This document shows, piece after piece, positions 25,304-46,438 of a stretch of 64,000 nucleotides of DNA. Each line of letters opens with the position of its first letter. Position 1 is the stretch's first letter. This stretch comes from Trichoplax adhaerens (lineage: Eukaryota > Animalia > Placozoa), in the NCBI RefSeq assembly GCF_000150275.1, contig NW_002060945.1:9316011-9380010 (forward strand), given 5' to 3'. The translations under genes were made by a program, and so were the position numbers. The notes under the pieces are model-generated. The model saw only the letters and a program-made list of their open reading frames with translations. It did not search any database and had not been told where the DNA came from.

Positions 25304-25712
25304 ATGGCTGCAAGTTTACCGATGGAAAAGGATCCAAAGCAAGCATTAGAAGTTTATCGACAATGGAAAGACCAAGGCACTAATGACTCATGTTCTATCG
25401 GCCAATTAATAACTCAACGCCGTTCTGCAGTTATTTATGAAGATTTTATTCCTATTTGCCAAGATTTACTTGATTTCTGTCAATTATGTTATAAAAGCTT
25501 AACAGATGATTGCCAAATTAATTCAAGTTATTATCAACCGAGAGTCAACAAAATTATTCAATTAATAGAAGAGCTATATCGGATTATGCTAAATTTATGC
25601 CAAGTAGAGCAAACCATTCTTCAAATTCAACAGGAAAATTCTGCGGCAGCAATCGATCTACAAGCAGTAGCATTACTAAAAGATCACAAAGATACTGATA
25701 GCGTTCCGTGGG
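25304..25712 (+). CDS. RasGEF coding exon 1 (helical N-terminal region)
   Basis: ORF MAASLPMEKD...DSVPW, in-frame TAG upstream at 25268-25270, donor G|gtaaga at 25713; joins in phase 1 to tttag|GT ATA ATA GAT at 28932. Confidence 0.8.
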
Positions 25713-28700
25713 GTAAGAAAACGTTGAAATATATCATGGATAGAATCTAATTATATTCAGTCGTTTTTACTTTCGTTTTAGCGATCTTTCCGGAAATTTA
25801 TGATCCGATGCAATATTTTGTTTTTTGTTACCAATATAGCTGCTTTGATAACTGAGTAAAGGACTAACTAATAATAATGCTATTACTCCAATCTTATCAA
25901 TCAAGTTTTACGATTATAGTTTATTAGGATTATTTAAATACCGAGAAAAGAATTCGATGAGTCTATCTTAATTGTATCTCCAACTAAATCGAACTTTATA
26001 AAACCCATTTTCTTGATTCGTATATCAGCTTTGCATACTAACTTAGAATTAATTTATGTAATGGAATTTCAACGAGATAGAAATGATGCAATTCATCATC
26101 AACAGTCTAGTATTTATTGATTATGGGACTGTCTAATTTTTATTGATTAACTTTAATGCTGGCCTTTTTTACCCTTTATAAGATTGCTCAACAATCTCCC
26201 AAAATTCTATCGATCAAAGAACCTTAATCAGAATTAACATAGACTCTTAATTTCCTATATTAAATCCCATATTGTATTTTTTTGTATGCAAAGTTATTGT
26301 TGTAAAGTTGTTTAAACTCCTACTTTTAGTTCAAAATTGATTAGCATTGTACTAGTTCTGGCTGATATATTGAAGATACAGCGGTAATATAAGTTTCCTG
26401 TAGGACTAGAAAAACTATTTTACGAATAGATTAGAGAATATAGATGTGAATGAAAGGTAGGTTGTTAATTTATTCCATTAATTTTGAACTTACTTACCTG
26501 ATATCCATTTTAATGTAAACGAGTGACTTATCAAATAATAACTTTTTTAAATAGTGAAAATTTTATTTATTAATAAGCTCAGAGCTATATGGTGATTTAT
26601 TCCAACCCTTTACAGTATAAATTGAGTAAATGGCTAAGGCATTAAAAGATAGCATAAGAATCCAGAATAGTTCACACAATGTCATAAAATTGGTGTCAAT
26701 ATACACTAAAATGATTAACTAAAAAGGATTAAGTTTGCACTTTACTTTTGGTAGGTGTTAAGCTATATAATTTATCATTGTTTATCACAAAAATGACTGG
26801 TACTAAAGGGAATCTTATGGATTAGCATAAATTTCAGGTGGAATTTGTGTCCGATATACTAAAAGAATCCAATCCAATCTGGTTCATTTATCACTTTATA
26901 CATCATATGTGTTTACGCATCGTAGAAATCGATAAAATTTCTCTATTGCTGGCTAGCACAGATTCTAACTAGTAAGGCTTAAATATCTCCTAAAATTACT
27001 GCATATCTGAATAAATTCAGCAGAATTTCCCTATTACAGAGATAGATATAGGATTGAATTGAGTGCACTACTTATAAATTACCGACAAAGAATATTCTAA
27101 TAAAAAATCTACGAAGTTTTTCCTGCTGCCGACATGACACTAGATTAAATCTAATAAGCACTGCTTGAAATCTCAGAGAGTTAAGGGTTGATGGAAATGA
27201 TATTTGATCACTCACATAGAATATCAAATAATTAGACAAAGTTAAGGATTAATTGATCGTTAATTAATAATTTCATAGATATACAACTTTACGTATATTT
27301 TAAAAGGTTAAATTTTGTGTAGATATATCTATATCCCTCGTTTTATTTATTACTACTTCCGAATAAGTCTAACGGAGCTTCCTATTACAGATATTGATAT
27401 AGGACTGAATTTAGTATATTAATACTTATGAATTACTGATAAGGAATATCGTAAATAAAATCCATAAAGCTTTCCCACTGATTACATAGTAATGATGGCA
27501 TTGGATTAAATCTAGTATGCGTTTCCTGAAATTCTTGACGGTTAAGGGTTGATTGTTCAATAATTATAATTAGACGAAGTTAAGGATTAAACGATCGTTG
27601 ATTAATAACCTCCTAGGTGAACAACTTTGTTTTAAAGGTTCAATTTTATGTAGAGCCATTTCACTTCTCTAGTTGCATTTACTGCTACTTTATGCTTCAG
27701 GCAATAATTGAATAATTACTTAACATTATTAAAAATGTTAGAATAGAAAATAAACGGAATAAATGGTAGGTCTTTAGTTCTAGCATTCGAGTAATGAATA
27801 TAATAAAGTTGTAAAGGTATAACATATAATTATAATATGGTTTCAAATTGATTACTCTTTCATGAATTCTGTGATGACTATGACAATATTATGCTATAGC
27901 CTCCTTAACTATCAGATCTTTCCATAATCTACTATTATTACGGAAGGCTCTAATCTATTGTAGCCTAACTCCTTGTTAGATATTCTACGCCAATAATTGA
28001 TATTTTATATTGTTATATACTGCATCTTCGTGGAGCTTTTATATTGTTGGATATCCTGTCATGGGCACCAGGTCATCTTAATTACAGTTTTCTGATTGAC
28101 ATAAAGTACATAGAATAATCTATTACTATATAAGTACAGATAAATTCCTTTAGGAATATCCCATTAAACGTTGGAGATTATGATAATTTATTATGGTATA
28201 TAAATTGATGGATAAATATCGCTATCTCTTATGAAGCTAATAATTGCATCCTGATCTACGATATCGATGAAGGTTATGATATTATAGGGATATTATGATG
28301 GAGGATATTTAGGGTTTTATGCTATGAGATAGGATCGATTTTATTAATTGATACACTGCTTGAAAAATATCCTCGATACCCTGAATACTATTCTAACTCA
28401 ATAGCAAATTCAATTTACTCAACTTAAAAGGCATTCTGTATCCTTTACGATATTACTGAATTAAGTCAATCTTCTTGGCTAGAAACTGTCCAACTAGTAA
28501 ATCGAACTAGTTGCATTAATGAATAGCGTAATACTATCAGAAGAGTATCGACCTACGGAGAAAGTAGGAGATTATAAAGGCAAATAAGTGCCTACTCGAT
28601 ACAGCTTTACTAATCACCATTTCAATTTTAAATGACGTAGATTGTATAGCTGATGGATTCGATATTTATTTTAGCAATGAATAGCATGATATTATCAGTA

Positions 28701-31700
28701 CAAGTCTATGCATAAGTAGTAGAAATTTAAGGCAAGAAAGTGCATACTCAACACAGCTTTACTTTTCTATCGTCATTTTAATTTAAAACTGATGGATTCG
28801 ATATATATATTTAGCCACGAATAGCATGATACTGTTATTGCAGTATCGATCTATGCACAAAGAGTAGATAAATTAATTAAGGCAAATAAGTGCATACTCA
28901 ACGCAGCAATAATAATCTTGATTCTATTTAGGTATAATAGATGAAATTTATCACCATGAAATTGCCGGTAAAACCATCAGTTTAGCAGCATCGACATTAC
29001 CGCCGTTGATCGATACCGTAAGCCAAGAATTAAGCAAAGATGTAGTGAAGAAAATTATTGAAACTATTCAACGATTAACTTGGAAAATGGAAGCTGCAGT
29101 TGAATGCGAAAACGGCGATAGCCCAGTGATTCATTCCATCATTTTCACGCCAGTTAGGCAACAACAATTAAATTGGGCTATGCTTCCTGAGCCATCTTGT
29201 GGCAGCAGTAGGCAATCTGGTCTACGAAGTAGTTTTCATTTATCATTGCCTTATCCAACGGATGATATTAGCGGAAAAGGTGATATCCTGACATCGCAGC
29301 CACCTTTATTAGATCCAAATCATGTCGCTAATACCGATGGCCTTCCCGATCCAGCAAATTTATCCATCACATCCGACGAGAAAAGCTCCAACCATAGCAA
29401 GCAAGATACGACTATTCAGCCTCCCAGTGTTGCTATAGCTGATCGATCTACTATTGTAAATCATGATGACGATGATCGTAATCGATCAACAGATCAAAAT
29501 GAGACTTTTCCTGACAGTCACCAAGAACAGAAACGTAGCTGTCATGATGTCCCATCTGCCACTCGATTACAAGGAAATAACGAAGATTTATCAGCTCATA
29601 TTCTTCCTTGTAACATCAACATTAACAAGAAGAAAAGTTTAGACAAAGTTATCGATACAAAAGAATTGAAATTACCACCAGAAAGCGAAGTTGCAGATCC
29701 ACCTTTAAGCCCTATCTGCCATCCTAGAATCCCTAGTATCATCCTAATGAAACAAAGTTCTAGCTTAGATGTGGTGCAATCAGTCTCTGGCAATGGCAAA
29801 GTATCCAACGAATTCAACATCACTTCCGATGATATAGATAGTAATTCACCGACTTATATCCATAATAGAACCTGTTCCTTCGATTCTGTTCATGCTAATC
29901 ATGTCTTGACATTAGCTCGTGATAATTCAATGTCTAAAGTGATGGAGAATAATAACAAGTTGACCTATCGAAAAATTGGCCGTGAAAAATATTTAACCCT
30001 AAGACCGCTATCGGATGTGCGCTCATCGGCAGTCATGACCCAAGAAGATTTGACCAAATTAGGCTTAAAAGTGGACCTATTAGGACAAGTGGATAGCCAA
30101 TCGATCGATAACGAGATTAATAAGACTACAACGACGTTAGATATTAATACATCCACTGTTTTTCGACAAAGTTGTGCCGATATGGTACAATTATTCAGCT
30201 CACGGAAGCAATTAAGCCGCGTTAACGATGATGTCGAACCGCCAACCATGAAACGAATGAGTTATCATTCCAGCCAGGAATTAACTATACCGCTTATTAT
30301 TCATAAAGATTCTATAGAATCACAGAAAGAAGAAGAGAAAGAGGAAGAGAAAAGCCAAGGCAAAGAAGGGAAAAAAAATCTACAACTAGAAATTAGTCAG
30401 CCTCAATCGGAAGAATCCAAGCTACCTGCTGTTGACCAGGACATGGGCGAATCCCCCAAGCAATTATCGGTTTCATTATCGGATAACACGGATAAATTAA
30501 TTGCCAGTATTTCACAGATACAAGAAAATTTACAAGTCCTAAAACAAGGTAGAATTAGACTTCATTTTTCATTTCTATGTTGTGTCGTAATTTAATTTTG
30601 CCTACAAGCAATCAATAGCTGTCAGAAATATTTAGATTAGACAGGATTATAGGATAGTAGCAATCAATGAACCATACAGTATTTCGTTGAGAAAGTACCA
30701 AATCATATTAGCTCATAGATTATAAATTATTTATTGAACAGATTTATGGATTACTGTTTGCGTAGATTACGTACAATTCTCTACCTAGGCCATTTCTAGA
30801 ATAATGTTATAGAATCCTACACGACTTGGAAGATTCATCATGAATTTGATGTACTGTCCAATATTATTACCATTTTAACCCATGATGACAATAACAATCA
30901 AAAATCTATCATGGCTGTTCATCTTGCTCTCAAATATTATTTTATATGATTAGATGTGAATTGATTTGCGAATATATTACTATAATCCACCCTCTCAATT
31001 CAAAATGCCTAATGGAAATGGACTATATCCATTAATTTATTACCTATCATAGACATGCTCTTTAATTTAAACTAAGATACCGAATTATACGCGTACATAT
31101 TCAGCCAGTATACGATATGGTTATTCAATTCTTATTTTCCGTTATAGCATCAGTTTCTATAATGATCATATCGAAATTGTTGAACGCCATAGTTTAGCAA
31201 TTTTGATTAACAACAGCTTCATTGTAGCTTTAACCAGGGTAGTAAATGAATATATAGTTCGAATAGAATACCTAAATGATTTGCAATGTTAGTTTCCGCG
31301 TTGGTTGAATAGGATATATTTTGAAGTCCGTATATTTCGACCACAATAGTTTACTAATCAAAATTACCATCAACAACTTAAATATTGGTTTTAACCTGGA
31401 TAGTGAATGATATGCATCGAGCCTCGTTGTGTGAGATATAGCTGTGCAATCCTGTTTCCAATAATGGTTCGATTTTATGATACACAGGGTAATATTATCC
31501 AATTAGAATCATCGAGTATGGTAGTTTATTAGCCATAGTAGATAGTAGTTTTATTTATACCAGGACGGTCATCAATCATGCTTTGTGATAAAGTAAATGT
31601 CGTGACACTTAGGAAACAGAAAATAGTAGAAAATCGAACCTAACTCACTATACTGTCCTCGAGTCTAAATCACAGCGAGACCGTAAAAATACCTTATTCT

Positions 31701-34700
31701 TTAGAACGTATAATTCAAAGCTAACAGAAAAGTGCCTACGGAACATTTGCATAGAAATCAGTTTGAAGACAAGTTTACTGAGGATTACTAGAATGAAATT
31801 AAATGTTTAACTATTTCAACTGCCTTACACTCGTTTAGTGATATAATTCTAGTATTTTAGCCTATTTCTCTACCAAATAAAGCTTACCCTTATCTGCGTT
31901 ACTTTATTTTAAATGCTTTTAAATTCATTTTATTAATTGATAATGGCTTCAAATATTCATATGAATCTGAATATTAATTAAAAATCGCATGCGGGCTAAT
32001 ATCAATTAAAGTGGGGTGTAGCTGTATGAACTTTATTTACTAGGAGTATTGGTAATTGAAAATCATCCAATCAATTTTTTCTACTATTATGTAAACTAGA
32101 GTTAACGATAGCTTCTAATTTAGCTGTAACCAAGATACTAAGTTTTTTTTACAATTGATCTAGAATATGAATGTACATTTAACGTCTGTAGTGGTAACAG
32201 TTTAAAAATAAAGCATTTTTGGCTTGTTGTTGAAATTTTTAGATACTCCTTTGCAATTAAGTGTCACGCCAATATCTGTACGAAGTATGGGTAACTTTTC
32301 CAATATTTTGCAGCGTGCTCTACCTAAAAAAGTTGGCCAATCTGTATTTAAACATCGCTTTATCGTATACGAAATTAAAGTAACGACAATCTTGCCAGGG
32401 GTAAGTTCTACTTTATATTAATTATTATATATTTCTTGCACCCCACCTAACTGGACAGTTAAGATAGTTATAAGGTTTCCATATAATAAGCTATCAATGA
32501 ATTGACATTTGTAAATACTGAAGACTACTAGCTGCATTCTTTTATCGCCCTAGTCTATAGCTTTATTATCATCCTAACCTTAATTTGTTGGAAAATTTTA
32601 TTAGAAATAATCGATCGAAACTCAATGACGTAACAATTAATAATTATGAATAATCTAAATAATTGATGATCCCAGCTATTAAAATGTATAATGACGAAGA
32701 TAGCAATCATGACGCCTATATAGAAATACAAATTCGTATTGGATAGGATAGGCTACTCCAACAGAACGGAATTAACAGTATAGTACCTTTCAACATTCAG
32801 TGGATGGAACTAAAGCTATGCTATAAACAGCATTTGTTTGCGGTAGTCATGGATGTTATTCGACATCGTCGTCAGTTCGTGGGATTTTAATCCAAAACAA
32901 CAGTGCCATTCGATATATAAAAACCATGATTTAAAAAGTAGTCAAGTTAAGCTGTAGTTTATCGATTTATAATATGATTATTTAAAGCAATCAGCGATAA
33001 AATAGAAGAATATTTCGTTCCCTTGCTTCTTACAACCGCTGAACAGAGTGTTTAATGGAATTATGGAAAGTATACAGTAGAATGAATAGAAGCACCGTAG
33101 CTTACAAGCGGTAACTAAATAAACAACAGTATTCTACTAAATGGAAGGACCAAATTGTATTTCATAAGATAAGCAGTGGTCCTAATTTATGTTAATTAAG
33201 GATATAATTTATGTACGATGACTCAATGGAGGTAATTAACTAGCATACAAAGCATTGAATATGAGTCATGCTCAATTAATTCGCCATTAAAGAATCAATA
33301 TATTGTAAACATAATAGTCTTTAAATGTCCATAAAGTACTTTTAAGCGAAGCCATTGCTTGTACAGTACTTTAGACGAGGATTGATGAAATCTAGTCTCT
33401 ATATTAGCGATACAAAAGTTCTACTGTGCTCGTTATCAACATTATTCTTATTTATTAAAGCGGTATCATCCTTACATAACACAGAAAATTTTCTTTTTGA
33501 GATCATTTGTACCATTTTTTAACCCCTTTGATTGCACGTTATGATTTCCAAATTCATAAATTGAGTACAATTTAGCAGAATAATATAAATTTCAATATCA
33601 TCAGTATAATCTCAACAATAACAAATCAGTTTTGTATTCAGTGAGGTAAATAGTGAAAGAGTCGATAGGATACTAGAGTAAAAAAAGCTCCATACGTTGT
33701 CAATTTGTCATGGTTACAGAGAAAATCAGACAGGAGCTGGATAGTTGATAACATTTTAAATTTGGTTCAATCTTAAAATCTTGAGCTATATCTAGATAGA
33801 ATGAAGCGGAAATTGAATTGATTAACTTATTAATGCTATCGCTATGCAATATACCATCGCATAGTATGTAATAGCAAGAAAAAAGTAACTTGACTAATCG
33901 ATCATCTCAATCGATTTATGATTACGTCTGACTTTATCTCCACGATCGCCATTAATTTAATATATGCTATCGCGTTGACTATCTACATCTGCCGCTTGTT
34001 ATAAATTCAATTGAATCTTTCTTTAATAGATGTAATGAGAAGAATCTTAGGCTGCAGTAATAAAGTTACGACAATAGATTACTTATTGCATAACAATATC
34101 TCGTGACCAACATCTGTCAATAATTAAGTAGTCCGTATCGCGTCTACTGACAAGTTTACCAGTCTGCTGACATGGATACCGTAATGGAATGCTATGGATT
34201 CCGAATAACATTAAAATAGTTGAAAATCAAATCAACATAGCAGATGACTATTTCAATTCTCTAAATTGACTTGTAATGAGTAACATTTATTGACAAGCAA
34301 GCAGTAATTTAGATGAAGATTGGTGATAGAGTATGATAAAAGAATAGCTGATGAGTCATCAGTAGAGATTATCCTACTTGTATTAGCGATCTTAATGTTC
34401 ATGATGGTGATTGATTAATGAGTCAGCTAGTGGTAATTACTAATCATTACAGTGATTCAGGGTGATTATAATTTAAAATGAAGTAATTTAATTAATCTAA
34501 CCGATGTTGATTGATAAATTTACTGTATTTGATGAGGTGAAAATGAGTCAGAGGGAAGCCTTCCTTTATCATTTGTTCCCTACAAAAGTGGAATAATGTA
34601 TCATCCTCTACATAAACTTTTATGAAAGGTTTCATCTTAAAACAAATCAAAGCTTTTATATGTTGATTATTGATCTTACAAATTAATTAAAATCGAAGTA

Positions 34701-37700
34701 GACTACTTCAGATCTCTCTAAAAAATCGCTCTCTTACTGGTATAAATCTGTTATATAGCGCGTTAGCATCAGTAATCAGGATATTTCTATTCAACGACCA
34801 AAATTAATTATACTGTATGAAGGTTGTTATATAGTAGTATTAGCAGTTAGCCATCCTACGGAACCTTGGGCATATCTATTTCATGGCGAAAAGACTGGTC
34901 TGGATTTGCACACCTTCTGCAGATTACCTATAATAATATCTATGTCATTGGCAATTTTAAAGCCAAATTTATTTCTGTCAATTTAAGATAGTTTGTCTAC
35001 CGTGTACTGTATACCTCGTCCTATACTCATGGAACATAATCGATCAAGAATATTTTTCATGCTGCTAAGCATGAGCACCCTTCCATCCGTTAATAATATT
35101 ATTTGGTCCTGTTTATGTCATCAGATACAAGATATGGTATGTCTAACATTGCCATAAAATGAGTTTCAGTGAGCTTTATACTTGTATTTAGCTCTGCTGT
35201 CCTATACATAGCTATTCATAACAGTATTAGAAGTAGGACTTTTATGATTTACTAGTGCAAACTCCCGTCGCTTTGCTGACGGTTTACGATAATGTGCTCA
35301 TTTAACAGATAGTATTACCATTTGATAGACCTGTCAAATGTTATCATCAGTATTTCAGTTGTTGAACTCCATTTTTAGACAAGTACGGTAAGAAATATTT
35401 TGAGTTAGGTTATGGATTTATGCCGGTTTAAATGCCTACATTATAATTCAATTAGGCTTTCTGTTTATTCGCAACGACGAAAGATTTTCTGTGTATGCGT
35501 AATCTTCTATCGGACGTATCGAAGATAAAATGCATCGATATCCTAAGTTTAAATTTTTATTAGAATTTCGAACTTCATTGCAATTTAACAGTAAAAATGC
35601 TTGACATACCATTCTATAAAATTGACAGATAGCTCTTAATAGCCGAAGTACACGTAAAGTTCTGTAGCGTTTATTAGCTTACTAAGTTAATACCGCTGCT
35701 TTTTCAATTTTTCATCCGGGTAAAGAAGGGATCGAAAAGTTCCTGTTAGTATTTTGTTGCCATGGTCGAGTAGAGAAGCATGATGACGTATAATTAGAAT
35801 CACGTAGACATACATTGTTAGACAATTCCTTTCAAAAGTGTAAATGCTATACAGTATATTAAACATACGACAGAAGTTTTATTCTGTTTTATTGCAATCT
35901 ATTTGCAGATAAAGTAGAAACACCTATTGGCTGATATAGGTATTTCCTCTTAATTATTTTTAGCAAATCTTCGACTATACGATAGTTTGTAAGGAGGCAT
36001 TTACATCAAGTATACAAAGTACAGTTTATACAGCAAGATCTAATTTATACGCCTATATTTAGACCAAATTTTTGGATTATTTTTGTTTGCAATCATCACC
36101 TATACCGTGCGTGCATTTAGATCATATTAACGTTATTTTAGTGTTTCATTTTGCAGTGTGAGTCTGCAATAATGGAAGAGTTATCTGGGTAATTTAATAT
36201 AATCGTTCTATTTGCACTACATTTGCATATTGAGTCTATATTCATATCATATCATGATTATTTTTCCTCTATATAATTTGTAATACGTAATAACCTTATA
36301 TAAAAATTTGGTCTGAATAACATCCATGAATAGTATATAATATGGATACATATCGCTCGTATTCCACATATTAGTGTATCAAATTCTATATATGATATCT
36401 CCTACGTGGCAGAATTCTATACAAATACTTCAGCTCTATATTTATGGTACAATATAATCAATGCATGCTATTTCTGGATCATTGTGCGGAAATATTTATA
36501 TCGACTAAATATTAAGATCTGATACATATATTTTAGTATTTTTGGGGCTTATGGATTGTATTTAGTTTATACTTATATCATATTTTTCCTATTTATATAC
36601 GACGCTTACGTATAGTGCGCGTTGAACTACTGTTCATTACTATTTGCTCTATTTCGGTATTCAAAATACAGCAATAGTATAGGATAGTTATCAGTTGTCA
36701 CCATGATCATCTAATTTAAAGTACAAAGTATGAAATTAAGACGGGTCGCCTATAAGAGTATAGCAAACACGTTTGATTGATATTTATGAAATCGAACCTT
36801 GTACAGTATAGTGATCGACACCGGATAATGAATCAATTTTTCAGATACTGCAGGTTCCTAGAGTAAATGATCCATTTTAGAACTCTTCAGACAGACTTTT
36901 GGATGGGCAAACCCAAATTTCTCCTCATTTTGCTGAAAGTCCTGTTTTACCCTAGTTACAGCCTTCATTACTATTTAGATTTGCTAAGTATAATTCTGTT
37001 ATTCGGGACCTTGGCTTACAGAGTACATGGCATCGGTTAGAGGAATTTTTGGATTGAGTAGTTCCTGACTGATTACAGTATACAACACATCTAGTTACCT
37101 AGCATTTTTTATTGTCGGTATGTTATCCGATATACAGTGCTACGTTATATACTAATAAATATCCCGGCGAACTTAGGTTTGGATAATTTCCTATAATTGA
37201 TAGTATTATGTACTATTAAGTGTCTGTACGCCCAATTTGATTGTTACAATTTACAATTTATTATTTTTTAATACAAGGTCGATTTCTCGCTCGTTCTACT
37301 TCATATACTATACTTGTACCTTTTACTTGATAATATCTTATTTATCATTTTAATATACAGATTATTCTTGTTGATTCTAACATGGGAACAATATAGCATG
37401 GTAAATTTATTAAATCAATCACATCACAAAAGTTTGATTGATTAAAAGCTAAACATAGACAAGTAAACACTAGCTTGCCTGTATGATTATCCTTAAAATT
37501 GAATAGACCCGTAAATAACATTTTCTCTTGAAAAGAATTCAATATCCTATGTCTTTGACTAGGATATTGGACTAATATCGTAATGCTAAAGACTTTACAG
37601 CCAGAGTTGTGGCGTAATCACTTTTCGTCATGAGAACCAATAGAAAATGACCATATCCGAACTCTATTGCAACAGAGTGTAGTATCATGCTTCTTTATTC

Positions 37701-40700
37701 TGACTGTAGAATAATTATTGCAATGGCTACCGCGTTAACTGCTGATCTTATTACAACACAATGCAGGAATAGCTAAACGTAGATAAATGAAAGAGAAGAA
37801 CTGTGGTCAGGCATTATTATTCCACAATACTCTTAATACAAGTTGTATTTTCTCGCCGTTTAATGGCTCTGATGCTAGACAAATATTGTGCTGGTAGTAA
37901 TCATTACGTTTAATCAACGGCCATAGTAGGGTAATGATAACAACTAAGACAAATATAGACAATCAATAACAACGATATTAAAACTATGCAGTTATTGGAA
38001 GATATTAGTCCTATAGACTAGCCAATACTAGACAGGCTATTTCATTCAGTGAAATGCAAAAGACTTTAAATCTTAAGCATGAATATTGTATCCAGACGAT
38101 ATGAAAACAGACAAATATAGGGCTAGATGAACCAATAGAAAATCATTTGAGAAACGTTTTCTCCTATTTAAGACATTGATTTATCATTTCAATCTAGGCC
38201 CAAAGTCTATCCTATACTATAATAAGAAAATTCAAGCAAATTTGCAAGTTGTACGATAAACTATCCAAAATTGACCATGAAGGTAAGAATTGTCATCAGA
38301 AAAATCAATGTCTCTTCACTATCAAGATTACAAGTAGGACTATAATTGTTGTTGAATTATGTTGTCAATATCGTCGTGTACAATCATCTCTAATTATATA
38401 ATATTCATGATGTCTGCTTTGTCATTATAAAACTTTGTCTCTCTATTAATCGATATTAGCATCAATGCTTTACTGTTATGATATGAATAAATATAGACAA
38501 CGATTAAAAGAATGCAAACTACTATATATTTAAGGAAAATCGTCTGTCCATTTTTAGTCTATCTAATTGGTTATAGTAATCTTGCTTTCCTAAAAAGTAG
38601 CATAAACTCCTGGGTATTGTAAAACTATTTCTGTTACAAATTAAAATTGCCTACAAGAGTAGTCATTAAGTACGACTGCTACAAGGATTATTGCCGTTCG
38701 TTCTATTATTCCTACCCCCTTCCCGTAAAAAAGAAATTATCAGCTACTAATCAAGAATCATCATGTCGTTCGATACAGGGCCACTACCAAGTAAGCCAAT
38801 TAAGCGATTTTTCAGCAAAGACAAGCAAAAGCAACTGCAAAAGGTATAAAATTGTATTAGTTTAAAATCGATTCAATGTTAAAAGTTTGTCACTTTATGC
38901 TAGTATATCAGCTATAGCTATTTTTCTCTTTTATTCAACTATATATAAATTGACAGTATTTTGATTTATTGGCTCTTAATTTACTGATGCCAATTTAGTC
39001 TCACGAATAGAACTTTTTAATAAAGATTAAACTATTCTAAGCGATAGGTATTGATAATCATTATGCACTTGTGGCCTTCATTTTTTATTGCCTAAGTGGA
39101 TATACGTAAAACTCTGGCAATCTGGAGTAGTTTGGAATGACTAGAATTAATCCTAGTCTTTATGTGCTTGAGCTCTTGCCTTTTTTTCCATTTTGGCCTG
39201 AATAGATTACAGCTACGATAATTTAGAGTACTTTTGAACGATAAATGTTGTTCATTATAGTTATAGTTTATTAGTCTACACCTTCTAGCTGCCAATTTTT
39301 AAACGGATATAAAAAGTTGCAATAATCTATGGGACGGAAACTTTTTAACGTTAACATCGGCATTATGATATAAAATTCAGTCCGATGTTTGATATTTTCA
39401 TTTTTCAGCTATCTGCTCGTAATATTACATGACTGGATACTAAATTAAAAATTAATCATCAGTCTTTAACATCAAATGAGCCCTATTAATTTTCATTCAA
39501 TCAGTCTTATTGAATTGAGTAGATAATTTTTATTCTCAATACTTGGTGTTTTGAACTTGTTTTTTTCTAATATAATTGAGAAAATACATCAATCTTGTTA
39601 AAATTTGGAAATAAATTTTCTTCAAGACATTATCTAGGAGTGGAATTAAAAATAGAAGTTTAAACTAGTCATTTTAATATCCTGATTCTATATTCAATTA
39701 GGTTGAAGGCATCCTCAAATTTGTTACCTCCAATCCGAAACTTCGAACTAGTGATTGCGTAGTCGAATTTCTAATGCCAGATCAACAAGCAGACCGTATG
39801 TTTGAAATAGAAAATCTTACCATCTTTGTATATTTTCTTGATTTATGGCTGCATAAAAGTAGCTGTCTAGCTCATCATAGATAATGGTCTAATGTTTCTC
39901 TACTTTAACGATTTGATACCATAATAAGTTACATTTTTTAATATAAAATTTCCCATTAGGTTCTTATGACGAAGCTAATTTAGAACATCGTGCATCATCG
40001 GCTGTGGATTTATACAATGTAAGCTTTATCTTATATTTTTAATTTAAAAGTTATGATTCCTTCAAAGTGTACAGAATGATAAATAGGGTTAACGCGTAAT
40101 TTTATTTTCTTATCATAAAACTCTGACTGAAATTTTATGACCTATTTCCATTTAACGATGTATAGCTTAATGTATTGTAATTTAATTTTAAAACAAAATT
40201 TTACCGATGCCGTTTAATAGATGATTGTAGAGGATAAAAGCTTTCATTTTTAGTAGTCATGTACCTGATTAGCTTATTGTATTAGATTTAAAGTCATATT
40301 TATTCCAATGCTACATATCCATACTCTCTTTTTCTTGCTAGTATATTGAAGAAGTACAGTTTTAATTATAACTGGTTATGAGCCAGTAGCCATTTCTAGA
40401 CTTGTATCTATCGGAGATAAATAGAGTAAATTGTCAGCAAAGCCGTCAATTCGATGCTAGTATTTCCAGAATTTCTCTACATTCTTGACGTATATCCTCT
40501 AATTTACTAGCTTCCTTTGTATCGTTATTTAATTCTTAAAAATTTTATGCTATATTAACTACATCATATTTATACTTTTAGAGCATAACTCCGTAATTGA
40601 TGTTCGGATATTAGTATAGGCTTATCTCGTTGTGGTTTCTATTTCTAATAAACCAATGTCAGTCTAATCTGAATGCTAATACATTATAGATGCAATTTCA

Positions 40701-43700
40701 AATTTATACATTGGTTTATTCTTTCCTAGTATTTTTTTATTTCTTTAACTCCTAATTTTTTATTTTACCTATATTGTATTTATAAGGCATTCTAATGCTT
40801 TATTTCCTGCTAGCCAGGACAACGCGTTTTCTGTTCGTAAATATTAAATTTTTTTTTGATATCGGCGATTAGATTACTCACGCTAATCAAAAAGCTTTAT
40901 TAAATGTTGCGGCTTCCGTAAATATGCGATCACCGTCTTCCTCTCCAAGTAAGTTGTTAAGCAATAACTATCACTATAAAGTACTAGTTCGGTAAAATTT
41001 TCACTCACTTAATATAAAGAATAAAGATTTTGCTGAATTAGTACTTATTAACATAATAAAGAAGTCTACTTACCGATGAGCTTTTATTTATAATATTGTT
41101 ATTAAATGGATATTAATTTCTTTCGTGTGTAGTTTACGATAGTTATCAACATAGCAATAGAAAGAAAGTAGGATTTCGAAGGAGTCTCTTATTAAGATAA
41201 GAAGACTTTCTTCTGAATTTCTAACAAGAGGGGCTTTAATAAAGACGATAGATTAATCCGGTTTTTAATTAGTTTTTCTATCATCGTAGTGATTATAATA
41301 TCTACCTGTAATAATTATCTTTTCAATAAGAATAAGCTTGCGCAAGAGAAAATTAAATCTACAAATTTAAAAAAATAATAAATATAATTAAGCACTAAGA
41401 TAGGTTCATTAATTAAAATCGTAGGCTTTTTATTCAGCTTCAACACATTTTCATGCACGTTGCTTTTGCTTAGACTTTTTAACACATGAGAATAGTCTTA
41501 TTTAGGTATACCTATATCACACTCGAAGCTGTAATATTATCATTGTATATTTAGGAAATTAGAGTTGCTGATTTTACACTAAACTACGGTAGTACTAAAA
41601 AATGACTATATTCAATCACAACGTATCGCCTAGATTTGATCGGTCCAATAGATAAGCATAAGATATGCTTAAAGCTTTAGTTTTTTAAAGTGCAACTGAT
41701 TGATATATTTTTACTCATAACATAATGTTAATTAATTAATGATTTTGTTTTTTAATAAATCACGTAAATACCTTGCCATATATGGAAAAACAGAGATTCC
41801 AAGATGAAATTGATATTAAAGTATCGATAATTTTAATTACATCCATTATTCGTTTGTAGACTATAACTCACTCACTGATATGTAAATTAACGATATGAGC
41901 AAATTCAAGTTACCCAGGAGCCACTATAAATGCGTCTTGGAAAAGAAGTATACGTAGTAAAACTATCGATCATAGGAAACAATCATCCATATTGTTGAAA
42001 ACTAATTTATAATAGATTTTGGGTAATTAATCTCGAAGGAGTCCCTTATTTTTGGATAATTCTCATGTATGAGCATTCTTAAAATTTTCACATGCAAATT
42101 TTACACCTCTGACAGAAACTAGTAGAATAGAGTTTTACACTTGAGTATTGTTCGATGACATTAAGTAAATTATATAGTGGGTAACTTAATCCTATATGAG
42201 CTAGTTATGGTTTTAATTATTTAACGATGGGATATTAAAAATAATCACTAAAGAATAATACTGAAATCTAAATATGAAAGCAATATTTTACTGTAAAAAA
42301 GTGATATACGATGTTCATAGTAATAGTTAAATTTAGACAGATAGATATAAATTATCAATGATGATGATACCAATAAAGAAATTGTGTTGATGATTAATAA
42401 AGTTAATACGATGATAACAGCAACGACAACAATAGTAATGATACGTGATATGATGATGGATTAGTATAGATAATTGGCCGTGTGTCTGATATAAAATTTT
42501 ATCACAATGAGCTATATTGATATTATTTTAATTTTATAATCTTGTATCTATTATTAGATATTAATTCTTGTTTTTTTTACTCCAATACAAAAATATCAAA
42601 ATATAGGACAATCACCGATTATTTCCCAAAGATTCTTTACACGTCGAGGTTCAGCCACTCCTAAAGCTACTACTGCGAAAGAAAATCAAGATGTTGTCTT
42701 TAAAGAAGGTAAATAGCAGTAAACCAGAAAATGCTCAATAGTAATTTTATATTTCAATCTTGATTTCAATACAAGTATATTCGGCGTACTGTGAAAGATT
42801 AAAGTCAAAGTTTTTTGATGAGGATAAATACGACTTCAGTAAAAATTATTATTTTTTGTGTTTATTATTGTGATTTGATGTGATCTATTAGTCCTATATT
42901 TCTAAAAATGATTATATGCAAATATAAAAAAAAGAAATGCAAGTAAAACAAAATTGATAAATATCATTTTATCTAACCAGAGGATAAACCAACTATGATT
43001 CTAACATGGAGGAAAGATAAATATATTGTAGCAGCTGGAACTATCGAAAAATTAGTTGAACAATTGACCTGTGAGGACAGTGCAGGTAAAATGTGATAAA
43101 AGATTAATGCTTTGCTATACCAGTTATTAATTTCCAATATTAAAAATAGAAGTAATAACTTACAATAAATAGAATTAAAACCTTGTTATACTGTGAGCAT
43201 TTGTAAATTATCGTGCATTGAAATAAATATGCCAAAAATTATCTTCTGTTGTTTTATGTAGACGTCGGCTATGTTAAAGCTTTCCTTCTTGGCTATCGAC
43301 ACTTTGCTAAACCGGAAGCAGTACTACAAATGCTGCTATCTCGATATCTTTAATATACTATGTATGAATTATGGATTACTTGCATAAATATAACCACAGC
43401 ATTAATTAATATGTAGCTAGAGTTGAGTTTGTGTTAGCTTATTGAAAATTATACCCAGGTCGAAATTATTTGGAAGACAACTACAATATTAGAATTCGAT
43501 AAATGAAAGATGATTAAAGATATTATTGCTCAGACTTTGAAACCTACATCAATTACAGCGGAATGAAATATGAAGTAATTTGGTAGAACTCTAGCACTTT
43601 TGTCCTTTCTTAGAGATACTTATGATGTATAGTGTTATTTCCTTCCAATTACTAATTTAATAATTGGCTAAGCTAGAGCACGTAAACTTTATTCTTATCC

Positions 43701-46333
43701 TATAATATGTTTCTAATGAATAACTTAATTTCCTATATTTTATCATTAGATATTTTACAAGTAATAATAGTAAATAATCCATCATTGACTGCAATGATCT
43801 TTAGCGAGTAAAAACAAATTTATTGTTCTTAACTGTAACTACATTTAATGTCATGTTGCATTATGATGCAACGCAAGAAGAGCTTGAATACGTCGAGAAA
43901 TGGGGATTAGTCATTAGATTAAGGTAAGAAAATTAGCAAAGACTAAACTTCATAAAATTTTCTTGCTGTCTTGACAACAATCTATCTCCAATGGAATTGA
44001 TTACATGAAAGGAATTATCTTTTATAATATAAATCTCTAAAAATACACTGTACTAGTATCTCAAGAGAATGCCACTGTTGCTTGTTAGATTAGTGTTATA
44101 AATTCTTTGATGCTCAAGATTTAAGTATATTATTAAGTCTATCAAGTTATAAAAGTTAATATACTATTCCAACTAGGACTATCAATACCTTGATGCAATG
44201 GATGGAAAGATGTTGGTGGGATTTTCAGGGAAACGAGTCTATGGTTAGTAATAAATCTACATCTGATCCTATTAAATATTTTCCTGTGTAAGAATACAGA
44301 TCTTAAGATGCATACTAAGCTTAATTTAAAAAGTGTCATAATTTAAAGAATTTAGAGGATTTATAATAATTCTAATTATTTAAAATCCATGCTTATATAA
44401 ATTTAAACATATTACAGTTAAAGCATGTAGATGACTTCGTTGAAACTTTACTGGTTTCTGATGCTGCGTTTCACAATGCTGCCAAAGGTATTGCCGATTT
44501 AAAGAGTAAAAAGCTCGCAAGCGGTAATAATTCAGAAAATTCATCTGCAACCTGGTATGGCCCATCAACACAATCGAAATTAACCAATATAAAAGATATT
44601 AAAAAAATATGTATAATGCAAGTACCTGCGCAGCAAATTGCAGAACAGGTTATTAGAATTCTATTCTTCAATTTTCTGTTGATAAAGAAATAGTTACACT
44701 TAACTCAAAATAGGACCTGTAAAATTTTCCTTTCGTTTTATAGGTATATATTAGTTTAATTATGCGTATACTTCTAGTAACGAGGTACATCGTAAAATAC
44801 TCTCAGTTTCTTAACTTACTCATTTGTTTACTCTGGCTAGCTAACTCTGATAGATTTGGAAATATTAAGATCAATCGGCCCAAATGAAGTCTTATGTCAT
44901 CTATGGGGATCGAAATCAGGTAAAATATTTTATTTCTTTTTAATCTATTCAATTAGCATTCATAATGTATCATTAATTGGAATGCTAATATTATAAGCAC
45001 AGTTCTACGAAATGGTAGTAGTGTATAGCAATTTCATGAATTATTTAAAGGTCTATGGATTAACCGGTTAATATATAATATTTAGTATGTAGAGATGATA
45101 AAGACAAGGCTGAAATTGCTGGCAATTTGAATGCCTATATCAAGCGATGGAATACAGTTTGTTATTGGGTCGGAACTGAAATTTGTCGCACTTTAGATTG
45201 TCGAGGACGTGCTCAGGCTATGGAGAAATTTATTGAAATAGCAAAGGTAACGATAACTTTATTGCTTCGTGGCTCATTAAAACTATCAAAAAATTTTTAC
45301 TAAATAATGTTAAAAATTGTTTCCGATATATTAGCATTGTAAAATAATTCGCAACTACAGTACAATGGCTAGTATAGTTGGAGGTCTTAACATCCATCCG
45401 ATAAGATCATTAAAGAAATCCTGGGAGGTTAGCTTATTATTATACGTAATATTCCTTTTCCTAATTTTTCATTTATATGTATATATATATTTATACATTT
45501 ATAAAAGAATTCGAAATAATGTTCCATGCATGATATCTACATCTTGTCATTTGCACTATGAATATAGTTCAATTTTTGATATTATTCTGTAATTTACGCC
45601 AATCTTAGCAACTTATTGCTCTGCTATTGTAATTTTACTTACGCATCTTATGATTGATTTATGTTTTTTGTAGTGTGTCGGCCATAAGTATGTTAAATTA
45701 TTGAATGAAATGGAAGATTTTATGAAGCCTGATCGAAATTATATCAGTTATCGTAAAGTCTTGGCTGATATCCCAACCAGCTGTCCATGCATTCCATTTT
45801 TTGGTAATGCAAACAGCTAGAATTTATATTCAATTAATTACTTAGCTTGCATTTATTTAGGATACTATTATAATCTCGTTATATTTATAACTGATTTAAG
45901 ATTCATCCTTATTGCTTTAATAGGTGTTTTCATCCAAGATCTAACTTTTCTTAATGACGGCAACCCTAAAGTTTTAGCTAATGGATTGTATAACTTTACC
46001 AAGATTAGAGATATCAGTAATAAGGTTAGCCTAATCAAAAATGGGTATATTTTGATATATAACTGGAAACTATCTACTAACCGAACATTAGCCTTTTTAG
46101 ATATCATTCTTAATTCTATTACTGTTATGGTGCTTTACTATGCACCTAGTATTATGTTTCTAATTTTAGAAACGTCTCGGCCATTTATCATCTCAGACTA
46201 TGATATTAACAATACGCATTTATCTATTATTTTTTTATAAAATATTTAGATTAACGAACTAGAGCGTTATCAACGTTCTGCTTATCGAATATCGCCGAAT
46301 CCTAAGATATTTTTTGGATTAAAAAATTTGTAA
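25304..46333 (+). CDS. PX-REM-CDC25 Ras-family guanine nucleotide exchange factor, 20 coding exons, ~1292 aa
   Basis: Hand-spliced exons: 25304-25712, 28932-30548, 32243-32400, 38198-38282, 38779-38843, 39702-39795, 39960-40018, 40873-40948, 42607-42708, 42981-43085, 43262-43343, 43843-43923, 44177-44243, 44418-44648, 44841-44919, 45086-45246, 45335-45427, 45674-45803, 45924-46024, 46250-46333. Total 3879 nt, all phases match, no internal stops; all introns GT-AG except one AT-AC. The 3' end is either TAA at 46331-46333 or a donor at 46330 leading to an exon hidden in the N gap. Confidence 0.9.
27027..27690. repeat. Intronic tandem duplication, ~350 bp x2
   Basis: Copies start at ~27027 and ~27379 (CCTATTACAGA...GATATAGGA.TGAATT; GTTAAGGGTTGAT; GTTAAGGATTAA). 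Confidence 0.85.
28544..28907. repeat. Intronic tandem repeat, ~150 bp x2.5, next to the exon-2 acceptor
   Basis: AAGGCAAATAAGTGC.TACTC..CAGC three times and TGATGGATTCGATAT...AATAGCATGATA twice; units start at ~28544, 28697, 28842. Confidence 0.8.
28932..30548 (+). CDS. RasGEF coding exon 2 (end of helical region plus long S/D/N/P-rich disordered linker)
   Basis: Contains the 529-aa ORF; acceptor tttag ends at 28931, donor CAAG|gtagaa at 30549; phase 1 at both ends. Confidence 0.88.
32243..39795 (+). CDS. PX (phox homology) domain of the RasGEF, exons 3-6
   Basis: Spliced translation KHRFIVYEIKVTTILPG|AQSLSYTIIRKFKQICKLYDKLSKIDHE|GPLPSKPIKRFFSKDKQKQLQK|VEGILKFVTSNPKLRTSDCVVEFL follows the PX pattern (Y-x-I-x-V strand, RRY-type helix, PxxP-K loop, terminal P-x-L-x-x-S-x-x-V-x-x-FL). 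Recognised by eye, no HMM run. Confidence 0.82.
33219..34550. promoter_or_regulatory. Candidate intronic enhancer with an AP-1 site cluster
   Basis: Exact TGASTCA at 33219, 33262, 34352, 34419, 34544; TGATTGAT at ~34408 and ~34508. Confidence 0.35.
36056..36319. repeat. Long imperfect inverted repeat / hairpin in RasGEF intron 3
   Basis: Arms TATTTAGACCAAATTTTT (36056-36073) and AAAAATTTGGTCTGAATA (36302-36319), with nested inner stems closing on TTGCAG-tgtgagt-CTGCAA. Confidence 0.65.
42981..44243 (+). CDS. REM (RasGEF_N) domain, exons 10-13
   Basis: KYIVAAGTIEKLVEQLT...DVGYVKAFLLGYRHFAKPEAVLQMLLSR|FNV...EKWGLVIRLR|TINTLMQWMERCWWDF shows the classic REM motifs (GT.E.L; FLLxYRxF; I.LRV...L..W......DF). 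Confidence 0.93.
43344..43842 (+). other. U12-type (minor spliceosome) AT-AC intron, 499 nt, inside the REM domain
   Basis: 5' site |ATATCTTT, branch site TTCTTAAC at 43826-43833, 3' end ...aactac|. Splicing restores LLSR-FNVML in frame; read-through hits TAA at 43351-43353. Confidence 0.9.
44418..46333 (+). CDS. CDC25-homology RasGEF catalytic domain, exons 14-20
   Basis: PAQQIAEQ|LTLIDLEILRSI..., WNTVCYWVGTEI...RAQAMEKFIEIAK|HCKIIRNYSTMASIVGGL..PIRSLKKSW, NYISYR, PCIPFF|GVFIQDLTFLNDGNP, YNFTKIR. Confidence 0.96.
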
Positions 46334-46388: not shown

Positions 46389-46438
46389 NNNNNNNNNNNN
46401 NNNNNNNNNNNNNNNNNNNNNNNNNNNNNNNNNNNNNN
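46389..46438. other. Assembly gap (50 N)
   Basis: Run of n; true length unknown. Confidence 0.99.

Follow-up and report, generated by a model that had tools for sequence, protein, structure and literature searches.

A placozoan gene model that probably places a PX-like domain upstream of a REM-CDC25 module

RasGEFs are grouped according to their accessory domains, which determine the place and timing of Ras, Rap or Ral activation, and one locus of the placozoan Trichoplax adhaerens raises the question of whether a PX-type domain can be among them. The locus lies on contig NW_002060945.1 (RefSeq assembly GCF_000150275.1), within the 64,000-nucleotide stretch from 9,316,011 to 9,380,010 that was analysed as a whole and is called the window here (G000:C1412:9316011-9380010; genome scans covered the 105.6-Mb assembly with its 1414 contigs). 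Positions are those of the window, and all features of the gene are on its plus strand. A first-pass annotation of this DNA had proposed that four small exons splice in frame into a PX-like domain between a disordered linker and an intact REM-CDC25 module. Our analysis suggests, with fairly good confidence, that one placozoan gene of 20 predicted exons encodes a 1292-residue protein that would consist of an N-terminal region, a long linker, a PX-like domain, a second linker and a REM-CDC25 module.

To build the model, exon boundaries and phases were derived from the DNA sequence around each candidate exon and then checked by script. The predicted gene runs from an ATG at 25304 to a stop codon at 46331-46333, its coding total of 3879 nucleotides (nt) corresponding to 1292 codons plus the stop; the introns comprise 18 of the GT-AG type and one of the AT-AC type, there are no internal stops, and all phases are compatible. 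G+C content is about 30% across the gene. The length is identical to that given by the first-pass annotation, including a 65-nt exon 5 at 38779-38843, and the four small exons (32243-32400, 38198-38282, 38779-38843 and 39702-39795) are predicted to join in frame as it had claimed, with AG/GT boundaries and compatible phases. For comparison we used the related Trichoplax sp. H2 (H2; the sequence analysed here is referred to as H1), whose contig NOWV01000168 is 99.2% identical to the window over 27.6 kb.

The case for a PX-like domain rests on exons 3-6, which are short (21-52 residues each). Exon 3 (32243-32400), coding in the H2 model as well and ending in phase 0 at a GTAAGT donor, would contribute the end of the long linker and strands beta1-beta2 (KHRFIVYEIKVT); exon 4 (38198-38282) would supply beta3 and alpha1 (SYTIIRKFKQICKLYDKLSK); exon 5 (38779-38843), whose acceptor fits the phase 1 end of exon 4, would encode the PPK loop (G-PLPSKPIKRFFSKDKQKQLQK); and exon 6 (39702-39795) would encode alpha2-alpha3 (VEGILKFVTSNPKLRTSDCVVEFL). 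The 84 positions of the current Pfam model PF00787 begin no earlier than beta3, about 10 positions ahead of the RRY motif, which leaves most of exon 3 uncovered. PX profiles were therefore built from the same genome, using 20 exon-level PF00787 matches together with Trichoplax SNX20 (P0035); a word search for PX proteins yielded just two, and the hidden Markov model used below comprised 22 PX fragments of the genome. With all filters disabled, the profiles were compared with all stop-free stretches of 12 codons or more that the window contains on either strand (3629 stretches, 90,024 residues). In hmmsearch, the highest-scoring stretch of the window was exon 6, with 6.5 bits over profile positions 86-105; exon 4 came fourth, with 4.9 bits over positions 32-51, and exon 5 fourteenth, with 3.3 bits over positions 54-76. 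The top colinear PX chain in the whole 64-kb window, both strands considered, was exons 4-5-6 at 14.7 bits, a score matched in 7 of 2000 position permutations. When the exons were aligned to the same alignment with hhalign, exon 4 (17.4, P = 0.0027) and exon 6 (21.4, P = 0.00036) fell at the expected columns and exceeded all 220 controls of similar length (mean 8.1, standard deviation 1.8, maximum 13.2), while exon 5 (10.7) was not set apart from these controls.

For the strands upstream of the RRY motif, a beta1-beta3 profile of four sequences was made after recovering these strands from three further Trichoplax PX genes. The exon 3 stretch ranked fifth of 3629 against this profile (6.1 bits), with KHRFIVYEIKVT at the exon end aligned to strand beta2, and exon 3 also matched the PX fragments L029 and L030 pairwise. 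The Trichoplax PX gene L030 carries VYSIKV and RRFRQF within a single exon, and their counterparts in the present gene are VYEIKV, which ends exon 3, and RKFKQI in exon 4. A merged full-length PX profile brought no gain over the separate profiles, phmmer searches with exons 3 and 6 against Protein Data Bank sequences returned nothing useful, and the end of exon 3, searched against the genome, matched nothing but itself. The same-genome sorting nexins (e.g. SNX20) share with this gene the colinear arrangement of beta2, beta3-alpha1, PPK loop and alpha2-alpha3, and differ from it in that the present gene has Lys-Phe for Arg-Tyr, has no alpha2 Arg and falls below Pfam detection in its single exons. 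They differ further at the PPK loop, for which the motif is Psi-P-x-x-P-x-K (PMC6449406): exon 5 reads G-P-L-P-S-K, keeping the P-x-x-P-x-K core and replacing the hydrophobic Psi before the first Pro, a large aliphatic residue in the sorting nexins, with Gly. At the level of profile and pairwise alignment, exons 3-6 thus resemble the PX domains encoded elsewhere in this genome, and they do so in the right order.

The module that follows the second linker was recognised by Pfam directly, exon by exon, which bears out the earlier description of it as intact. Exons 10-13 (42981-43085, 43262-43343, 43843-43923 and 44177-44243), with consistent phases, are assigned to the REM domain; RasGEF_N (PF00618) matched the stretch 43222-43350 at 26.4 bits (model positions 20-50) and the stretch 44160-44288 at 17.5 bits (positions 75-101), single-exon scores that sum above the whole-protein cut-off of 28.3 although each was scored separately. 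The H2 model of 569 amino acids (aa) bears a precomputed PF00618 match as well. Exons 14-20 (44418-44648, 44841-44919, 45086-45246, 45335-45427, 45674-45803, 45924-46024 and 46250-46333) encode the CDC25 domain and the stop, and five successive exons matched RasGEF (PF00617) at positions 6-33, 30-79, 79-109, 111-153 and 149-181 (14.2, 39.8, 28.5, 38.8 and 25.0 bits, respectively), so that profile positions 6-181 are covered in order and four of the five scores exceed the cut-off of 23.1. The genome scan recovered the same RasGEF exons among about 11 RasGEF loci in the genome. Exons 18 and 19 read L..E...N..YR..L, a helical hairpin, and P.IPFFG...DL.F...GNP, two patterns which we take to be conserved motifs of the CDC25 catalytic core, and the protein terminates in the last exon, a short way past the CDC25 domain. 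Judged from these matches, the catalytic module is intact and C-terminal. The nearest solved structures to the CDC25 exon used as query were RalGPS1 (best) and Epac2, at about 25 bits, and the predicted activity of the domain is nucleotide exchange on a Ras-family GTPase.

Several observations weigh against a PX-bearing RasGEF encoded by one gene. With a PF00787 cut-off of 21.6 bits and exons 3-6 queried one at a time, Pfam returned no PX match on any of them even at E values up to 10; the genome-wide PF00787 scan gave 23 matches elsewhere and none within this gene; and the single-exon scores against our own profiles were low (3-6.5 bits). Extending the chain test to exon 3 and an 8-kb span gave 13 of 1000, weaker than 7 of 2000 because longer spans raise the null. 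The junctions 32400/38198 and 38282/38779 are sequence-predicted only, a competing frame for exon 5 has a stronger donor than the preferred one, and the H2 annotation places two models at the locus. Across 25304-42893, exonic and intronic differences between H1 and H2 were similarly frequent (0.64% vs 0.68%), showing no sign of constraint, and most of the exonic differences inspected alter the amino acid, a pattern which means either that the substitutions are too few for constraint to show or that the protein evolves fast. Taking these points together with the evidence above, we consider the predicted order of N-terminal region, linker, PX-like domain, REM and CDC25 to be probable, and the earlier PX assignment holds as a colinear profile likeness beyond chance (exons 4-6, with beta2 in exon 3), without a Pfam PX match on single exons.

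How such a protein would act was addressed through the residues of the putative lipid pocket. Binding of phosphatidylinositol 3-phosphate (PtdIns3P) depends on four residues, namely an Arg-Tyr pair where beta3 meets alpha1, the Lys of the Psi-PxxPxK motif and an Arg in alpha2, and PX domains that lack any one of these residues do not bind PtdIns3P (PMC6449406). In the profile alignment, the Arg-Tyr pair is replaced by Lys-Phe (in IIRKF) and the alpha2 Arg is absent at the expected position, leaving the PPK Lys as the only one of the four residues that is kept, which makes endosome targeting doubtful. A secondary-site His/Tyr column has been linked to di- and tri-phosphorylated phosphoinositides (PMC6449406), and at this column the predicted domain has an alpha1 Tyr with lysines nearby. 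Because the PtdIns3P pocket is degenerate and the secondary site carries this Tyr and these lysines, a di- or tri-phosphorylated phosphoinositide or a protein would be a more likely ligand than PtdIns3P on classical endosomal membranes. The suggestion of the first-pass annotation that the protein couples Ras-family activation to endomembranes is accordingly weakened, in that three of the four PtdIns3P residues are replaced, and survives in so far as another lipid may be bound. In the mechanism that we propose, the CDC25 domain would exchange nucleotide on a Ras-family GTPase, be it Ras, Rap or Ral, the PX-like domain would determine the site of this exchange by binding either a lipid of the membrane or a partner protein, and conserved blocks of the long linker might act as phosphorylation switches.

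The alternative that survives best accepts the single gene and a true PX fold and holds that the domain binds no lipid, serving instead, packed on REM-CDC25, for protein binding or autoinhibition. The replacement of three of the four PtdIns3P residues fits this possibility, and many human PX domains bind no membrane in any condition tested (PMC6449406). It is countered by the retention of the PPK Lys, by the conservative nature of the replacements (Arg to Lys, Tyr to Phe) and by the alpha1 Tyr flanked by lysines at the secondary phosphoinositide-site column, and we regard it as possible, though less probable than not.

A second alternative concerns exon 5 alone. Within 80 nt, at 38715-38795, two frames each encode a PLPxK sequence (YPLPVKKK and GPLPSK), of which one is usable per transcript. 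An exon in the YPLPVKKK frame, at about 38664-38790, would lengthen the alpha1-PPK loop and add about 20 residues to the protein. Its acceptor is compatible with phase 1, its donor at 38791 (GTAAGC) is strong, and its hhalign score (11.3) is about equal to that of the preferred exon (10.7). In hmmsearch, however, it scored 0.0 bits compared to 3.3 for the preferred exon, and its sole pairwise match covers 6 residues compared to 25 columns in the preferred frame, where exon 5 is 48% identical to the PX fragment L022. At 38783, where H1 and H2 differ, the substitution would change the amino acid in the other frame and is synonymous in the preferred one, and the H2 RasGEF model, whose first exon begins at ATG 38763, reads the preferred frame and not YPLPVKKK. 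Use of the other frame is therefore unlikely in our judgement, and the preferred exon 5 at 38779-38843, which gives the total of 1292 aa, is retained.

The remaining alternative arises from the H2 annotation. Its model TrispH2_009514 (P0001, 775 aa) contains exons 1, 2 and 3, which the annotation thus joins independently of our prediction, followed by a terminal exon at 32747-32887 (located by tblastn with P0001 residues 729-775) that matches no family and probably represents either an error of gene prediction or an isoform that truncates the protein. The second model, of 569 aa, runs from ATG 38763 past the end of the H2 locus sequence compared and carries RasGEF_N and RasGEF. Exon 4 (38198-38282) appears in neither; it has no Met and directly follows a stop, and therefore cannot begin a gene and needs an upstream exon, and it takes phase 0 from exon 3 and passes phase 1 to the acceptor at 38778/38779. 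That the locus holds two genes, one made of exons 1-3 plus 32747-32887 and a RasGEF gene starting at ATG 38763, with the PX likeness of exons 3 and 4 arising by chance or as a decayed remnant, agrees with an annotation made with MAKER and transcript evidence (PMC6057997), with the 5.8-kb length of the repeat-bearing intron between exons 3 and 4 and with the lack of a transcript joining both models in the protein collections, but is quite improbable, since a gene from 38763 would begin inside the PPK loop without beta1-alpha1, exon 4 as PX beta3-alpha1 beats all 220 controls and fits the phases of exons 3 and 5 exactly, and the H2 authors themselves caution that multidomain proteins are modelled differently from one annotation run to another (PMC6057997). 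In our assessment the two-gene annotation is most probably an artefact, to which the 5.8-kb intron with its high-copy repeat and the small exons are likely to have contributed. The locus would then be a clear instance of a public annotation that divides one gene inside a domain and overlooks one of its exons entirely.

Whether the predicted one-gene architecture has known relatives was examined with the CDC25 domain. A 74-aa CDC25 exon, searched against 1.84 billion representatives at E values up to 0.001, gave 32 weak matches, with no self match and a maximum identity of 53% (43-53% for the best matches). Among ten of these matches that were looked up, four came from the amoebozoans Arcella and Filamoeba and from Fonticula, and the others from metagenome or sequencing-run contigs. 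None of the ten matches scanned with Pfam contained a PX domain, although the queries were single exons and this gives weak grounds for absence. On two matched GC-rich eukaryotic contigs, Pfam and the PX profile found REM-CDC25 only and no PX, one of them having a PTB-like region upstream. All clusters that the CDC25 exon retrieved in an Atlas search were RasGEF clusters, and literature searches for a PX-RasGEF yielded nothing relevant.

Comparison with established families places the predicted protein between several of them. Like the RasGEF1 type, it closes with REM and then CDC25, the last element of the chain, and like C3G (RAPGEF1) it has a long, largely unstructured regulatory region ahead of the catalytic module. 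Unlike both, it has a PX-like domain upstream of REM, an N-terminal region of 230 residues that has, in word searches, no relative outside placozoans, and CDC25 matches that, where traced by name, are amoebozoans and Fonticula and not animals. RalGPS (CDC25 with PH), SOS with its PH domain and RasGRP with its C1 domain similarly join CDC25 to a reader of membrane lipids; in the Trichoplax protein, the candidate reader is PX-like, neither PH nor C1, and lies N-terminal to the catalytic module, and the REM domain separates the protein further from RalGPS, which lacks one. Fusions of PX to regulators of G proteins are found in ARHGAP32/33, which are PX-RhoGAPs, and in SNX13/14/25, where PX is combined with RGS, but the regulator in these proteins is a GAP or an RGS domain and not CDC25.

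For human proteins, the first-pass annotation had stated that no RasGEF family is known to carry a PX domain, and a survey of all human PX domains (PMC6449406) agrees with it, containing no word that starts with GEF or RasGEF. The combination of a PX-like domain with REM-CDC25 is probably a new one that is absent from humans. More tentatively, and with less than even probability, the protein may be the first recognised member of a RasGEF class in which a PX-type module, in place of the PH, C1, DEP, RA or SH2 modules of the known animal families, positions REM-CDC25. Such a class would either be old, of non-bilaterian or holozoan origin, with a later loss in vertebrates, or have arisen in placozoans, and split gene models would have hidden it. 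If this is true, a PX-coupled RasGEF would add a new type of input to the family in one of the simplest animals, and early animal Ras signalling would have used domain combinations that vertebrates lack.

The region upstream of the PX-like domain comprises exon 1 (25304-25712), which contains the start codon (the first ATG after an in-frame stop) and the N-terminal region, corresponds to P0001 residues 1-137 and ends at a GTAAGA donor, and exon 2 (28932-30548), which encodes most of the long linker in 539 codons. Exon 2 is 99% identical to P0001 and 54% identical to a second placozoan-like sequence, P0002, and matches no Pfam family; in word searches, neither exon 2 nor the 230 N-terminal residues had matches beyond the H2 protein and one other placozoan-like open reading frame. 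An AlphaFold2 model of P0001, which covers exons 1-3 only, shows helices in the N-terminal region at a predicted local distance difference test (pLDDT) value of 31, and is unusable. The linker, previously described as disordered, does appear so, and yet it is not featureless: despite the overall identity of 54%, long blocks are invariant between P0001 and P0002 (e.g. HPRIPSIILMKQSSSLDVVQSVSGNGK, and the block from LRPLSDVRSSAVMTQEDLT to GLK). Several of these invariant blocks contain basic-x-x-Ser patterns, which may be kinase or 14-3-3 sites and, as such, phosphorylation switches. The linker between the PX-like domain and REM is Ser/Pro-rich and is encoded by exons 7-9 (39960-40018, 40873-40948 and 42607-42708), which have AG/GT boundaries and consistent phases and match no Pfam family.

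The AT-AC intron lies within the REM domain (43344-43842). Its 5' end reads ATATCTTT, the element TTCTTAAC is found at 43826-43833, approximately 10 nt before the 3' end, and the terminal AC is at 43841-43842. These features characterise introns of the minor-spliceosome (U12) type. Prediction programs restricted to GT-AG introns will mis-model this part of the gene, which may account for the length of the H2 RasGEF model, 569 aa where 541 are expected from these exons.

Other features of the locus were also recorded. Intron 3 contains, at about 35239-35344, a repeat of approximately 100 nt with many genomic copies (461 candidates, 40 of which were scored at 93-100% identity), which looks like a short interspersed element or one of the miniature inverted-repeat transposable element type. 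A further stretch of intron 3, at 37627-38100, is duplicated at 100% identity in a small unplaced contig (G000:C953:2231-2704), probably as a result of assembly redundancy. Elsewhere on the contig that contains the window, a PX exon match (G000:C1412:1500465-1500563) lies 29 kb downstream of a RasGEF locus (1529336-1530114), both on the minus strand, and the two probably belong to separate genes. At the 3' end of the present gene, an assembly gap of 50 N (46389-46438) begins 56 nt past the stop codon, in the likely 3' untranslated region.

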